DNA of 64,000 bases from Saccostrea echinata (lineage: Eukaryota). Below are positions 2,714 to 10,213 of this stretch, in pieces. The first letter of the stretch is position 1. Every line of letters begins with the position of its first letter. The stretch covers positions 13,702,001-13,766,000 of the forward strand of contig NW_026889803.1 in the NCBI RefSeq assembly GCF_033153115.1, read 5' to 3'. The position numbers and the translations under genes were made by a program. The notes under the pieces are model-generated. The model was not told the origin of the DNA and ran no database searches. It saw only the letters and a list, made by a program, of their open reading frames with translations.

Positions 2714-4142
2714 CTTACCGTATAGATAATGAGTAATCTTGTAAAATTCTTCAGCACCAAGGTAAAATTCTTTTAATATTTAATATTTTCAATTCAAATG
2801 GTATTTTAGATTTTTTTTTTCCATTACAGTTTCCAAATAGTCCAAAATAGTAATCAAAAATAGCAATTATTCCGATCATGGACATTAACAGAAACTGTCT
2901 GCAAGATTTATAATTTTTTTTCCTCTTTTCAAATATTTACTACAGTATATATGTACATATTTGTTTTATGTCTTGAGGGAATGATGTGTATCAACAAAAA
3001 CTGGGGGAGGGGGGGGGGCAACAACACCTAAATAAAAATTTACTACAGCAAAATATACTTAGAAAAACGGGGAAGTCACGCTCTCCCAAATTCTACAGGC
3101 CTGAGTAATTTAGCCTATAATTTTAAGGACACGTAAAAGTATTAGAAGGCAGAGATTATTTTTTCAGGGGACGTCCATTTGATTCTAGAGGGGGGCTGTC
3201 AAAAATCATGCCTTCACATGACAGAATATTTTTATTTCTAGGATGACAATTAAGAGCTTCTTTTAGTTATGTCTTCACTGAAAAAAGTTTGACAAACAAA
3301 AACAGGGAGGGTTGTCCAAACTAAAAAAAAAACTTTCTTATTTTTTTCCAAGATCGTTCAACCCCCTCTCTCCCCTCCCCAGCACACATATACACACACA
3401 AAACAGAAATCAAATATTTGCCCCCTTATGTTTCTTTAAAAATACTGGACAGAAAATCCTGATTTATATAAATTTCAAACTATTCCGTAATTGAAATTAT
3501 TTGTCTTCTGTGGCAATCAGTAACACCGTGCATTCTAGAGTAGCTGAGGTGGATTGAAAATGAATTTCAAACTAGTTTCAATCCAATGTTTTCTCAGACG
3601 TCCGTGTCGAATTGTACCCGCCCATTTCATTGTCTATCATTAAATATTTTGACTGTAACAGATGGAAATGACGTAAGCTGCATATTTCCAAGTTCTGCGG
3701 TCTTATTGTATGATACACTATAGATTCCTGAATATACACTAGGAATTTATTGTCACGTCATTTCGCAAGAAGCTCAACTCAAGAAATAAGATTACTCACT
3801 TTATTCTTATGTTGCTGAAATACGTGTAAAAATTCCTGATCAACAGTCCGCTTGCGAATTCATGTCTAATTTGACGTTTGCGATATTTACGTAGTTCTCG
3901 CATAAAATAAGGAATCTACAGTATATAGGCCTCGCAAACAAAAAGTATGATGATTATCTAGGTAAAAAAAAAAAATAAGAAGAAAATAGAAGAGAAAAAA
4001 AACTTAGAAAAAATATATTTTAATTTTACTAAAAGTACGCAAATTAACATCACAGTGGTATTTCAGGAATTATGTTATGTACAACATAAAATAATTTTAA
4101 TTGCTATATTCAAAATAATTTATAAACTTTTAAAAAAAAAAT

Positions 4143-7100
4143 CTATGTAATATTCAACTCCTCCAAAACATCATCTCTATCTATACTCTGTAAGGCATCC
4201 ACAACACCTTGAAGTCTGTCTTTTCCCATGTGTTTCAGTTTCCTGAGAAGTTGGTAAGTAATTTCATAATGCCCTTCATCTTTGTAGTCCATTTCTACTT
4301 GTTCAATCTGAACCTCTTTGAAACCTAACCGTCGACAGAACTTTTTATAATCACGTCCCAAATTCTCTGACAGTTTATCACATTCTTCATCTGTTATTGC
4401 TCTGTCAGGTGCTGGTTAAAAAAGAAATAATTTTATGGAATCTCATTTTTTACTTAAGAATTATATATGATTTTTTTTTTGTTATTTATTAACTGTCAAA
4501 ACAAAACTTCTACAAAGAGAAACAATATTTCTAAAACTTGAGCTTTCATTCAAATTTTAAAGATTATGAGTAGATTGAAGATAAAAGCTCTGGCATTTAA
4601 GAAATATTATTCAAAGTCAATTCAACATTCTATGAAACTACATGCAAGTACATATACACTGCAAGAAATATAATATATGCTTGTGAAAATCCCCTGATAA
4701 CTCTTCATGTCAATCTGTATAGCTTTTTTTAAGGGAATTTCCATACATACTTAATTCATTATTTTCATTTTTCACTTTAGAAAAGGAAGTTCAATCTGTG
4801 TTTAGTTTTCCTTCCTTTATACCACTTTAACTATAAGTATTATTCCTAAAACAACTGTTTTCATATTTGCTTTGTAAAAATGTGAATCATCTGCAGACAT
4901 TTCTCAGGATTCAGTTTTCAATGAACAGAAACAAACATTTTGAATTTTGAATTCATTCTATCGATATCAAGGTAAAACAGCTGTAGAGTACTGTAGACCT
5001 TACTACAGTCACTATTGGTGCAAGTTTACAATCACTGAAAGAATTCATTCAAGCTTTTTTTTTTGCATTTAGACATGTATATACACCACTGACCAATAAA
5101 CTGTAAACTTGCACCAATAGTGACTGTAGTAAGGTCTACAGTACTCTACAGCTGTTTTACCTTGATATCGATAGAATATTATGTATATAATTGTTTTGAA
5201 AATTTTAAGGACAATTTAATTATTTTATTTTTAATTTATGACAATCCAGTATATCCTGTCAAAAACCCTCATACATGCAACATGCAGCACTGAGAAAGAC
5301 AGTCAATAAGAATATAGGCTGCTAACTGCCTTGCTGTTGAAAAAAATGGTTCTGAATGTAGACAGCTCACTCATAGATTAACGATGAGTGGATTCTGAGC
5401 TAGAGATATATAGCAATACTCCTTTTTTCTTGAAAAAAAATCGTCAATTTTTTTCATTTAACTTCAATTGAAAAAAAAAACATAAAAATCAATTATTTCC
5501 TGCCTTCCCCCAGTGGCAATTCCAAACAAACAATTTCAACGAATGGCCTAGACTACTTTTTTGTATAAAGAAATAATTTCAGTCTATAAATTTACATTTG
5601 TTTTAATGCAATAAAAACTGGTCCAGAATAAAATCTTTTGAAGAAAACCTACAACAAACATAATTAAACCCCACCCACAGCCCTTGAAGGAAAAGGTTAC
5701 ATCTAAGGGTTTACAACCAAAGGCTCCCTTTCATTGTTTGATTTTCAATATGCATATATATGTCACACAGAATGACTGCAGAAAAGCATTTGTCTGGAAA
5801 CTCATTGTTGGTTATGCATTCCCCTTTTTTCCATTTCCTAATTGATTGAAAAAGGAATAAAAGAAAACCATCTCTGATCCCAATATTAATGGGTAATCTT
5901 AAAATAAATAAAATGAGCAGAGGTTGAATGCAATGCCAAGAACATATATGAGACATATCACACCTTCGATCTTCTTCCTGTCCTTTTTCTTAGCTTTTTT
6001 CTTCCATTTTGAACTTGAGGCACCATGATCTCCCACAACCATGAAATTCTGATCTCCTATTTGTATATTTGGGAGCTTGTCGTTGGGAATTGTACCCAAG
6101 TGTAATGTGGTTCGACCTCCACCTCCTGAAAGGACAATAGAATGAATGTTGATAAATTAAATACTGTCTTTCAGAAAAAAAACCCTTAGAAGATGGACGT
6201 TTTAATCTTACATTGTTTTGTTAGTCTACATTCCAATATCATATACTTCATTTAACTACAGTCAAACCTCATTATCTCAAACTCAATGGGATCAAGGAAA
6301 AACTTCAGGATATTCTTGAGTTCAAAATATTGAGGGTTAAATACATAGAGGAAAAGGGGTTGGGATTTCCAAACGACTTCAACATATCTATGGGATTTGA
6401 CATGTTTGAGATACCGAAGTTCAACTGTACTAAATACTAATTCCAAGAAAACTCTTATAGTTCATTAAGTGTTGGATCTGTAAGTTTCCTTATCTTTCCT
6501 CAAGAGAAGTAACAAAATAGACCACAAAATGAGCTGAATTCAGACTGATGGACATCTCTATACTACATCAGTCTTAAGATACATATATCAATGTAATACA
6601 GACTCATATTCAATTAATGGAGGGAGGATCTACAAAACTTGGGAAAATTCATAAAAATTTATCTGGGAACTGGAATATGAAACAATTCAAATAGAATTTT
6701 TCCAATACACAAGTAATTTTGTAAGGAATTGTTGTCACAGTTATTGAACTTGTACACTCTTAATTTTCCAAAGAACAAAAAAAAAACCCACACTATCAAG
6801 TCTTTTAAATCAATCTACAGGCACTTCTAGTACATGTCTTTTAATGACCTCCTTTTATGAGCCTATGTTGTATACATATATACATCTTTAAAAACATCTC
6901 TCATATAACTTTAAGGTAATTTAACAATGTTTTATCTCCAATCTCCAACTGCCATGTTGAGAAAATGCACCTTGTGCATGACTGACAATAATAAATTTTT
7001 ATGTAATCGTAATTAGAAATGATATTTACTATGTTCATAATGGATGGTTTGAGGTTGATCACTACTTCTAGATTTCTTTGTTGAATCTGAAGTACCCGGT

Positions 7101-7618
7101 CTGGCATCTGTTTCAATCTGGTAAAGAAGAAATTTTGTTATGTGTTTGTTCATTTAAATACATAAGTGACAGTGTTCACAAAGTAACATAATTCAAGGAA
7201 TGTTCATTGGCATCCTCACAACATCAGGGGTCCTGAGTCCACACATGCTCTTGGAGCCCCTGAGAGACTTCATTTGATGTTTTATGGGCTTGCTTCTCTC
7301 ATTTAAAAGATTCAGTCAAATTGGGGCTTTCATAAACTGACATAAAACATAAACAGAAAGTAATCAGTTGACACCTCAATGCATGTACTATAGAAAGGCT
7401 GAATGTGATTGGTCAGGAGATAAGAAAACAATCAAGTTTTGTAACTCCCCTGAGAGACCTTGCTGCAGTCAGCCCATAAAATATTGAATGAAGTTTGTCA
7501 GGGGTCCCACGACCACATGTGAACTCAGGAGACTCCTGACATTGTGAGGATGGTTCATTGACTAAAAGCTATGAAAGAATATCACCTCTGATTGATATGA
7601 TGCTACGTCTTCTTCCAT
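4143..7618 (-). CDS. Imd-like / RIPK1-C-terminus-like adaptor with caspase site, RHIM and death domain (183 aa)
   Basis: Exons 7618-7586, 7117-7030, 6125-5964 and 4411-4143 join through GT-AG introns in consistent phase (552 nt): MEEDVASYQSE|IETDARPGTSDS...|...NIQIGDQNFMVVG...KWKKKAKKKDRKKIE|APDRAITDEECDKLSENLGRDYKKFCRRLGFKEVQIEQVEMDY...YQLLRKL...VVDALQSIDRDDVLEELNIT*. The last exon is a typical death domain. Confidence 0.8.
4955..5177. mobile_element. MITE/foldback element with perfect 76-bp inverted arms
   Basis: 4955-5030 is the exact reverse complement of 5102-5177. Confidence 0.8.
6259..6427. mobile_element. Tc1/pogo-type MITE
   Basis: TA|CAGTCAAACCTC...GAAGTTCAACTG|TA termini with a TA target duplication. 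Confidence 0.6.
7211..7552. mobile_element. MITE with long imperfect TIRs
   Basis: CATCCTCACAA...TTGTGAGGATG termini, with GTTCATTG on both flanks (7202-7209 and 7553-7560). Confidence 0.7.
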
Positions 7619-10213
7619 GAAGTCTGAAATTGTCTTGGAAGATGCTTTTACAGTTTGGAATGATGTGATACCTGTCAACTACATACAAGAATATCTTATG
7701 ATAATATATTACACACAATACTATTTATTGCATTGAAAACTGCTTGGTATATAAAAAGAATAAATCATTACTCTTTCATGTTACCTTTACAATTTAGATA
7801 TAACTTTCACAGCTTCTCTTCTGTGAATTTAGTTAGAATAATCTAACTGTGTCTCGGGACAAGCCCTCGATCACCACAGTTAGAATATGTCCCATATACT
7901 TGCAATGTAGCAAATCGGAGTGGATCCACTCCGAAATGATTTTGAAGAATACAAAAGGAGTTGCACTGAAAATAACTACCAAATTAATCATAACAAACCT
8001 TTTTGAGATTGTATATGCCTTTTAACCTAAAAAATAATCCATATAAATACGAAAATTCAACTCATTTTCTCAACGTTTTTTCCTTGCTTCAAATTTAACG
8101 CCATGTTGACATTCGGAACTCTCTGGATTGTTCATAGAAAATGCACAGAGTTCGAGTTATCGCCCGTGTTTATTTTGCTACATTGCGAATACACGGAACG
8201 AATTCTATCGTTAAACCGGGTCCGTAGGACAATATCATTTTAACGATAGAACATTCTATCTACTGTGAATTGTACACGTAAACATGTTATCTTAATATGT
8301 CTCTGTTTACCCCAGGGACATATATGCCTAGTATATTAATATATAGGACCCTTTTTATACCAAAATGATATTAGTCCTGCATTTGGAATTAAAATTAACT
8401 ATTAGCAACATAACAAGGTCAGCATTGATCTTAGCTAGATATTTAGAGTTGACAATCATGATCATAGGTTTTAAAATGCTCCGACGTTAGATGGTCCTTG
8501 CAAACATCGGAAAATCAAACACGTGTCTTGTTCTTTCATATATTTATCTCAAAAGAGAGAAAGCTGATAGTGATCCAGTCTACATCCCACTTCTTTCAGT
8601 TTTTACCAAACCCAGGAAAGAAATCAAAAACTTACAAATTTGTCGATTGTCATTTTCTAAAAGTCCTCAATCATAAGTGCCAGCGTTCACTTTCTCAAAG
8701 ACTTTTCTGTGTTTACAATATCAATATGAATGCCATTATAGAAATTATGTTACCTTAAAAAGATTGTGAAAATTACCAAAATCCAAGATCGCACAAACCG
8801 AAAGTAGAATGGGAAGGCGGTAAAAGAAGTTCGTCAGATGCGACAGGCGATAAAACTAGTACTCCTGATGCCTCTCTCAACTGAATTGCGTTTTGTTTTG
8901 TTTTTGTTTTGTTTTGTCATTTCTTCTGGGTTTGTGTGTGTGTGTGTGAGGGTGTGTGTGTGTGTGTTTAATGAGGGTATCTGTAAACTACGAAAAGAAA
9001 AGAAACAAAACGAAACGGAGAGGAAACAAAAAGAAACGAAGAAAAGAAACGAAACGTAGATTTCATCAGGAAAAAGATGAAAGGAAAAAAAGATTTATAC
9101 AAAAAGTACTAAATTTAAGATGGGACTTAATATAGTATTGATTTTATAGGTCAATTAAAAGCACATAATATATATGATTTTGTGTATACATCTAAAGTAA
9201 ATTAATTTAGGGGGGAGAGAGGCTTTGTTCATTGATAATTTGCGGTTCTGTAGTGCATGTGACTTGTTAATACCATTTGACTGGAGGTTAGAGGCTCTGT
9301 CAGTTTTTCATGATGGATTTTTTTGTGTTCAGTATATGCGTTTATTGACCAATCAAGGATCCTCGGGGGATACACGGTATACACGGTTTAGGTTTTTTTT
9401 AACTACTAACAACTTCACATAGACTTTGAAACAGGAGGGGGTGATGTGCTCCCCCCTTTATTCCCCAAAACACATTAACATCTTAGTCCTTTCCCACTTT
9501 TTTCCCACAAAAAATTACTCGAATCTTGCACCCTTTCCCCCATTTCTTATATGTCTCGAAATTTTATAAAAATAAAAATAATTGCCATCAAACACCCTCC
9601 CCATCATATTTACACTTTTTTTAATTTCATGCATGTGCTTATCAGTGGGAAGAGCAAACTTCACTATATACTTATCGATAAAGGACACCCCCAACCCACA
9701 CACACACACAAACACACTGATAAGAATGCCAGATGCTTTTATATAACCCATGAAATCGATATTGTGATAATTTCAGTCTTGATAAAATAATCATTATAAA
9801 TTTATATATATTTTATTCCTTTTTTCTTCTTCTTATTTTTATTTACTTTTCATTTCTTTTCCTTATGTTTTTTCCTCTTTTTGTTTTCTTTTCGTTTTTT
9901 CACTTTCTTTTCTTTCTTTCTTTTTTTTTCGATTCTCTTCTTTTCGCAGTTTACAGAGTACACCATGACAGTTTACGTTTCTGGCCTGAAACTTTAGAAG
10001 ACTTTTCTTCCGATTTCAACCGAAAAAAAAAATATCTGGCTGATCTGAAGACAATTTTAAAGTAAAAAAAAAAATTCAATATCTATTTATTTATCCGTTA
10101 TCATGTTAGAATTTCTCAGTTAGTGTCACTTCTTTTAAACTCTTTCTTATTCATTTTTCTCTCTCCAAATTTTGGGGCTGAAATAAGATTTTCCAAAAGG
10201 GTTTTTTAAATAA

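Follow-up and report, generated by a model that had tools for sequence, protein, structure and literature searches.

A kinase-less RHIM and death domain gene of the oyster Saccostrea echinata, the probable C-terminal half of a split RIPK1, and its conserved caspase-8-type site

The DNA analysed here, referred to as the window, is a stretch of 64,000 nucleotides (nt) from the oyster Saccostrea echinata (contig NW_026889803.1, positions 13,702,001 to 13,766,000). It contains on the minus strand, at 7618..4143, a gene for a small kinase-less protein with a RHIM and a C-terminal death domain (DD), called the RHIM-DD gene in the following. This gene is very probably one half (the C-terminal one) of the oyster RIPK1 ortholog, which has been split into two adjacent genes on the same strand. 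The N-terminus of the product carries a caspase-8-type site, IETD15|A16-R-P-G (7117-7103; the bar marks the scissile bond), and sequence comparison shows a very strong constraint on the site and its Ala. The reading favoured here, fairly probable as a whole, is that the split-off half works as a caspase-activated adaptor similar to Drosophila Imd. The gene model (RefSeq) and the existence of oyster RHIM proteins are already known. As far as checked, two points are new: the oyster adaptor is half of a split RIPK1 with the kinase half adjacent, and the xETD|A motif is deeply conserved, with the block SEIETDARPG fully invariant in oysters. The initial annotation, made from the sequence alone, assumed a higher novelty than is left by the RefSeq RIPK1-like model, an abalone homolog named "protein immune deficiency-like" and two oyster or mollusc papers from 2024 and 2025.

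Exon structure, RHIM and death domain

The exons of the RHIM-DD gene are listed below in the order of transcription.

8754..8764, minus strand: 3' end of the non-coding first exon; donor GT at 8753-8752; spliced to 7678; yields the 183-aa isoform
8636..8665, minus strand: alternative 5' exon, last 30 nt evidenced; ATG at 8653-8651 (MTIDKF); yields the 209-aa isoform
7586..7678, minus strand: exon with ATG 7618, from contig pieces 7586-7678 in runs X1 and X3, translation and splice sites
7618..7586, minus strand: coding part of exon 1 from ATG 7618, MEEDVASYQSE
7030..7117, minus strand: exon 2, beginning exactly at I12; IETD (7117-7106), then A-R-P-G and a Ser/Lys-rich disordered stretch
5964..6125, minus strand: exon 3, with the RHIM NIQIGDQNFMVVG (core IQIG at 6066-6055) and the Lys-rich linker 5968-6006
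4007..4411, minus strand: exon 4 (last), with the death domain at about 4382-4155, stop TAG at 4145-4143 and 3' untranslated region to about 4007-4038, where the contigs end

The four coding exons proposed by the initial annotation hold in all their coordinates. The three coding introns are all GT..AG, with R and A as the split codons. The joints 7586 to 7117, 7030 to 6125 and 5964 to 4411 are each bridged by spliced contigs from three public runs, X1 (717 nt), X3 (759 nt) and X2, which match the window with 0-5 mismatches. The RNA nature of these runs is only guessed, but spliced contigs arise only from processed transcripts, indicating that the gene is transcribed and spliced. Each exon translation is an exact substring of P0071 (RefSeq "RIPK1-like isoform X2", Saccostrea echinata, 183 aa), at offsets 0, 11, 41 and 95. 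A mis-joined exon model was rejected on the basis of the spliced contigs and these exact matches. Exons were searched one by one, and the full-length analyses were run on the public protein P0071.

Two 5' exons give two isoforms. For the non-coding first exon, 9 loose letters of the X3 contig past 7680 match ...ATCTTTTTAAG|GT in the window, and the frame 8855-8754 is without ATG. The X2 contig joins 7678 to 8636 with GT..AG and a side of 30 nt. The resulting 209-aa isoform has 26 extra residues, and a matching extension is present in S. cucullata isoform X1 (P0072, 209 aa). An in-frame TAG (8659-8657) stands directly upstream of ATG 8653, and the whole contigs are only 717-759 nt long. No kinase is therefore encoded in the RHIM-DD product, as the initial annotation had claimed, and a hidden kinase in the transcript was rejected.

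The RHIM in exon 3 has the core I-Q-I-G-D-x-N-x-M. Across the six reading frames of the window, 128,000 codons in all, the pattern [IV]Q[IV]G..N.[ML] is present a single time. With a profile of five vertebrate RIPK1 RHIMs, the exon-3 frame was the sole match among 2,121 window peptides (E-value 0.0028; next 1.6). The motif definition and this profile bear out a canonical RIPK1-type RHIM, as first proposed. The RHIM is followed about 40 aa on by a RIPK1-type C-terminal death domain, and mollusc proteins have 118-137 aa between the RHIM core and the C-terminus, which matches the 128-133 of vertebrate RIPK1. Exon 3 had no matches to Protein Data Bank (PDB) sequences, and the genome of S. echinata contains this RHIM exon in one copy. 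In the AlphaFold2 (AF2) model of P0071, low-confidence strands are predicted at residues 60-71, where the RHIM lies, with disorder on both sides and also in the linker. The Lys-rich linker claimed in the initial annotation is present in exon 3, between the RHIM and the death domain, as the Lys/Arg-rich segment KWKKKAKKKDRKK (5968-6006, minus strand). Most of the aligned short forms from molluscs also have a basic linker, and the oyster segment could serve as a nuclear localisation signal or provide ubiquitin acceptor sites.

The death domain is well supported. Exon 4 matches Pfam Death (PF00531) with E 2.2e-11 and 44.2 bits, against a gathering cutoff of 22.6. Among PDB sequences it matches the death domain of RIPK1 (E 2e-10) better than those of TRADD (1e-3) and FADD (0.04). 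The AF2 model has helices over residues 102-179 with a predicted local distance difference test (pLDDT) score of 85-90, and its best Foldseek matches are RIPK1 death domain structures. These three comparisons agree with the death domain named in the initial annotation. The other matches of the DD exon in the genome of S. echinata are all distant paralogs. In a maximum-likelihood DD tree of 40 sequences, the backbone did not separate RIPK1, Imd-like and FADD-like groups. In a protein atlas of language-model clusters, the nearest neighbours of the oyster protein were small arthropod death-domain proteins (score 0.91), which is a lead only.

The adjacent kinase gene and the split of RIPK1

The kinase half lies upstream of the RHIM-DD gene in the window, and a TFAM-like gene is nested within it.

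19906..24578, minus strand: kinase-half gene, upstream neighbour; RefSeq "RIPK3-like isoform X2", P0113, 708 aa; Pfam kinase matches
12977..13441, minus strand: terminal exon of the long kinase isoform, ending in a stop; reached via exon 19803-19718; spans the TFAM-like gene
15171..16562, plus strand: intronless TFAM-like open reading frame (ORF) of 463 aa, from the ORF list; nested between kinase-gene exons 19718 and 13441

The kinase exons, at 24578-23000, are on the same strand as the RHIM-DD gene. Over 24578..20739 the window matches P0113 with 81-99% identity, one short piece excepted, and the last exon of P0113 (...DSGKK, then a stop) lies near 19922-19906. For the S. cucullata protein P0114 (862 aa), matches lie at 19801-19718 and 13441-12977. 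The TFAM-like ORF is a nested gene, encoded opposite to the kinase gene and within an intron of its long isoform. The oyster kinase proteins checked (S. echinata P0113, S. cucullata P0114 and Logan cluster P0115) contain neither a death domain nor a RHIM core, and Pinctada P0116 is kinase-only like them.

In scallops, mussels and clams, a search with the DD exon recovered proteins of 1035-1217 aa that contain kinase, RHIM and death domain together, several of them from intron-free transcript contigs. In the scallop protein P0034, residues 8-596 correspond to the oyster kinase protein, with 44% identity, and residues 1004-1143 to P0071 (E 2e-19); the two parts are found in the window in collinear order. 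Across the whole S. echinata genome, the best kinase match of the scallop protein is again this locus. The fused RIPK1-like proteins of bivalves (Argopecten P0034, Mizuhopecten P0109, Mytilus P0111 and Mercenaria P0078) are orthologous to the oyster protein over the RHIM, linker and death domain, and those of scallops and mussels also share with it a D|A site, LETD|A. In contrast to the oyster protein, they have kept in one chain the kinase, a middle domain that is conserved, and a long linker of low complexity. Among 5.8 billion clusters there was no fused oyster protein, although kinase-only oyster proteins were scored there at E ~1e-159 and a fused one would have reached a similar score. 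A profile search with the family alignment added almost no members.

Collinearity with the fused scallop, mussel and clam proteins and the single copy number point to RIPK1 orthology, and a kinase in the same polypeptide is what the RHIM-DD product lacks. These results indicate with high confidence that the RHIM-DD gene is the oyster RIPK1 ortholog's C-terminal half. The adaptor is without kinase because RIPK1 was split, and not because it belongs to an unrelated family. This gives a concrete model for the origin of a kinase-less NF-kB/cell-death adaptor from RIPK1, with the kinase half still next door in oysters. A mollusc origin of RIPK1/3 has reportedly been proposed by Sun et al. in a 2025 paper on the origin of necroptosis signalling (Dev Comp Immunol), known here as a citation only.

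A similar arrangement exists in the abalone Haliotis rufescens. It has a kinase and RHIM protein, P0117 (1228 aa, RHIM GVQFGENNVMVLN), without death domain, and on the same contig a 190-aa RHIM-DD protein, P0062, which is the one called "protein immune deficiency-like" by NCBI. P0117 has a RIPK3-like architecture, and the abalone state is related to that of oysters.

The IETD|A site and the putative adaptor function

The initial annotation placed IETD at 7117-7106, followed by ARPG, and both the coordinates and the sequence were confirmed. (I/L)ETD is the preferred recognition sequence of caspase-8, and caspase-8 cuts RIPK1 between kinase and RHIM. In the window as a whole (128,000 codons over six frames) there is a single [ILVM]ETDA. 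A chance origin of the motifs was rejected, since this motif and the RHIM pattern were each found only once. The segment around the site is predicted to be disordered, with an AF2 pLDDT below 50 for residues 1-35. The conserved block and the motif in each lineage are as follows.

7088..7120, minus strand: invariant block SEIETDARPG, residues 10-19; first two codons in the preceding exon, 7591-7586
Oysters: IETD|ARPG
Scallops: LETD|A(A/T)PP
Mussels: LETD|ASGS or AVGS
Haliotis: VETD|ASAE
Pomacea: LQTD|AELA
277-aa protein P0077: METD|AQPS
Amphioxus kinase-RHIM-DD protein P0049: LETD|AVTE

The block SEIETDARPG is 100% invariant in six oyster orthologs. For the other parts of the protein, invariance in the same orthologs is 11% for residues 1-9, 24% for residues 20-40, 81% for the RHIM and 61% for the death domain. 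On a wider scale, seven lineages have [ILMV][EQ]TD|A upstream of the RHIM (chance expectation 1.5e-4 to 4e-3 per sequence), and in the short forms the Asp of the site stands 46-52 residues ahead of the RHIM core. Only 15 residues (or 41 in the long isoform) could be removed by cleavage in oysters, yet the residues on either side of the scissile bond do not vary, which favours a function of the new N-terminus. The oyster exon 2 starts exactly at the Ile of IETD, which would fit a new promoter and first exons gained in the intron just upstream. The block also provides a precise target for mutagenesis. In the fused Mytilus trossulus protein P0111 (1051 aa) there are tandem sites, DLETD|AS and DLETD|SK, 33 residues apart.

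According to the favoured reading, the ancestral gene would have had the order kinase, long linker, xETD|A, RHIM and death domain, and would have been split in oysters. The RHIM-DD half, having its own 5' exons and start codons, would give a kinase-less adaptor of 183 or 209 aa. The death domain may dock this adaptor to FADD, TRADD or receptor-type death domains, and the RHIM may drive amyloid-like oligomerisation. A caspase-8 homolog would then cut after D15 (D41 in the long isoform), taking off a short propeptide and exposing Ala-Arg-Pro-Gly, which could serve as an IAP-binding motif (IBM) recognised by a type II BIR protein, of which oysters have many. After BIR capture, the Lys-rich linker would be ubiquitinated and NF-kB and/or caspase signalling would be set off, in the manner of Drosophila Imd. 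This Imd-like logic is plausible. Cleavage at D15 is given an even chance, and the binding of a BIR by the new ARPG N-terminus is rated as less likely than not.

A possible partner repertoire is large. At least 150 BIR matches were found in the S. echinata genome, which is a very large IAP expansion. One BIR was inspected (L008:1462-1746, minus strand) and is of type II (IBM-binding) by similarity to ML-IAP, cIAP1-BIR3, DIAP1-BIR2 and XIAP-BIR3. When this BIR, an arbitrary pick among the at least 150, was used for complex prediction with P0071 residues 16-50, the score was 0.02, which is below the mark and gives no evidence either way. The site suggests that the adaptor may be linked to this IAP/BIR repertoire, and such a link would be relevant to disease and stress biology in oysters.

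Several points weigh against the adaptor reading. Pfam RHIM (PF12721, 22 positions) gave no match to exon 3 or P0071 at E up to 10, so that, of the RHIM and Death profile checks proposed in the initial annotation, only that for Death was positive with the Pfam models. The Pfam RHIM result says little either way, because even genuine vertebrate RIPK1 scores poorly with this model (12-24 bits, with 2/4 below cutoff). The initial annotation also expected D|AxP to be conserved in orthologs. The xETD|A part is conserved in the seven lineages, but Pro at position 3 after the cut is present in only 3/7, and [ILMV][EQ]TD|A was not found in heterodont clams, fused or short (Mercenaria, Mactra and two further proteins). 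Position 4 of ARPG is a Gly, which is unusual in IAP-binding motifs. As caspases in any case prefer small P1' residues, the Ala by itself is no proof of an IBM. By analogy with D324 in human RIPK1, the site in fused orthologs could merely sever the kinase. The transcript contigs leave room for rare read-through transcripts. Cleavage, BIR binding, amyloid formation and the downstream pathway are predictions.

The strongest alternative, although rather unlikely, accepts the same gene and the same split and gives ETD|A no role in IAP binding. The product would be a pro-apoptotic or dominant-negative RHIM/DD scaffold feeding FADD and caspase-8, like the caspase-released C-terminal fragment of RIPK1, and the motif would be a caspase regulatory or turnover site. 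Consistently, the site is located between kinase and RHIM in the fused orthologs, like the caspase-8 site in RIPK1, and the residues after the cut differ by lineage (ARPG, AAPP, ASGS, ASAE, AELA and AVTE). The complex prediction also gave the IAP-binding role no support, being neutral. Moreover, a C. gigas RHIM-containing protein is reportedly tied to haemocyte apoptosis, according to the title of an article by Liu et al. from 2024 (Dev Comp Immunol 159:105226), known as a citation only; this protein may be the ortholog of the RHIM-DD gene, for which the C. gigas ortholog in the present comparison is P0086 (LOC105318256). However, with only 15 residues ahead of the site in oysters there is nothing to sever, and A-R-P-G is as invariant as I-E-T-D, which is hard to explain by caspase recognition alone. 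The Imd-like adaptor is preferred over the scaffold.

A bolder version of the adaptor reading, which is considered unlikely, is that a RIPK1-to-Imd transition is under way in oysters. The gene would have been cut a few codons upstream of the caspase site, and the adaptor would be activated in the Imd style, by IETD|A cleavage through caspase-8, IAP capture of the Ala-x-Pro N-terminus and ubiquitin-dependent NF-kB signalling from a canonical RHIM amyloid, with a switch ancestral to bilaterian RIPK1-type proteins. If this is true, the caspase/IBM switch would predate arthropods, because xETD|A is also present in scallops, mussels, gastropods and amphioxus.

Comparison with RIPK1 and Imd, and further observations

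The oyster protein shares with vertebrate RIPK1 the IQIG core of the RHIM, the distance from RHIM to C-terminus and a caspase-type site upstream of the RHIM, and the death domain of RIPK1 is the closest by sequence and fold. In vertebrate RIPK1 the kinase is in the same polypeptide, whereas the oyster kinase is a separate neighbour gene and the oyster product has only 183 or 209 aa. The vertebrate site is LQ[LV]D|C (LQVD|C in ray RIPK1) instead of the oyster xETD|A.

It is very unlikely that the split is only apparent, and that RHIM-DD is an internal-promoter isoform of a long RIPK1-like gene that also makes a kinase-RHIM-DD protein across the TFAM-like gene. Such an arrangement would agree with the 1105-aa and 137-aa forms of Mercenaria, which are in one 90% cluster and on one chromosome, and with the reading frame of exon 7678-7586, which is open as far as the acceptor 7678. 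In contrast, both oyster kinase isoforms have their own stops, near 19906 and at 12977, the contigs show only two nearby 5' exons, and the search that recovered kinase-only oyster proteins gave no fused one. In addition, by our own reading, the donor after ...KPSRK is in phase 1 and the acceptors 7678 and 7117 are in phase 0. A true split of the gene explains these observations better.

Like Drosophila Imd, the oyster protein is a kinase-less adaptor with a RIP-type C-terminal death domain, a RHIM-type motif ahead of it, a Lys-rich region and, near the N-terminus, a caspase-type D|A site with x-P after it. In Drosophila, Dredd cuts Imd, and the Ala-initiated IAP-binding motif recruits DIAP2 for K63 ubiquitination (PMC9496462). 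The differences are that Imd has a cryptic RHIM and its own motif, whereas the oyster protein has a canonical RHIM and ARPG; that the oyster gene comes from a lineage-specific fission of RIPK1; and that cleavage and DIAP2-type binding in the oyster are predicted from sequence. Proteins with RHIM and death domain have been described in amphioxus (PMC4262963), and according to a 2023 survey no Imd adaptor is known from molluscs (PMC9835746). The present analysis places the Imd architecture with a canonical RHIM in oysters, abalone, apple snail and clams.

The initial annotation regarded the protein as a mollusc equivalent of Imd. The architecture and sequence logic are indeed shared, but a free-standing Imd is not what was found, as the gene is collinear with the fused RIPK1-like genes of scallop, mussel and clam. 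This collinearity suggests that the likeness to Imd comes from an independent loss of the kinase rather than from descent from Imd. The least credible reading is that the gene is truly orthologous to arthropod Imd and was already separate and kinase-less in the protostome ancestor: the NCBI name of the abalone homolog, the small arthropod proteins in the nearest language-model clusters (0.91, a lead only) and a 248-aa match with D|AVP near the N-terminus and a death domain (P0066) would fit it, but the two halves are collinear with single fused bivalve proteins, the gene adjoins its kinase half and is the sole RIPK1-type RHIM-DD in the S. echinata genome, and the DD tree has no resolution in its backbone.

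Some further observations were made on the IAP loci. An intronless two-BIR IAP-like ORF (L008:1408-3072, minus strand; G000:C38) contains ...SNSTSNIQIG... between its BIRs, a RHIM-core-like IQIG. This IQIG is kept in three copies (L008, L009 and L010) and is absent from seven other IAP loci inspected; it may be due to chance, or the ORF may be a RHIM-bearing IAP. The BIR clusters on C38 (~1.98-2.22 Mb) and C44 (~2.00-2.22 Mb) are mirror images, equal in score and opposite in strand, and this points to a haplotig duplication or a recent inverted duplication.

Within the RHIM-DD gene, the intron between the RHIM and death-domain exons contains a perfect 76-nt inverted repeat (4955-5030 and 5102-5177) with a 71-nt loop, which looks like a hairpin of the type of a miniature inverted-repeat transposable element. 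In introns and flanks, the stretches 3400-3700, 6250-6430 and 7830-8260 attracted many short diverged contigs with many loose ends from all four runs, including that of another organism. These stretches are probably dispersed repeats or transposon fragments and do not belong to the gene.

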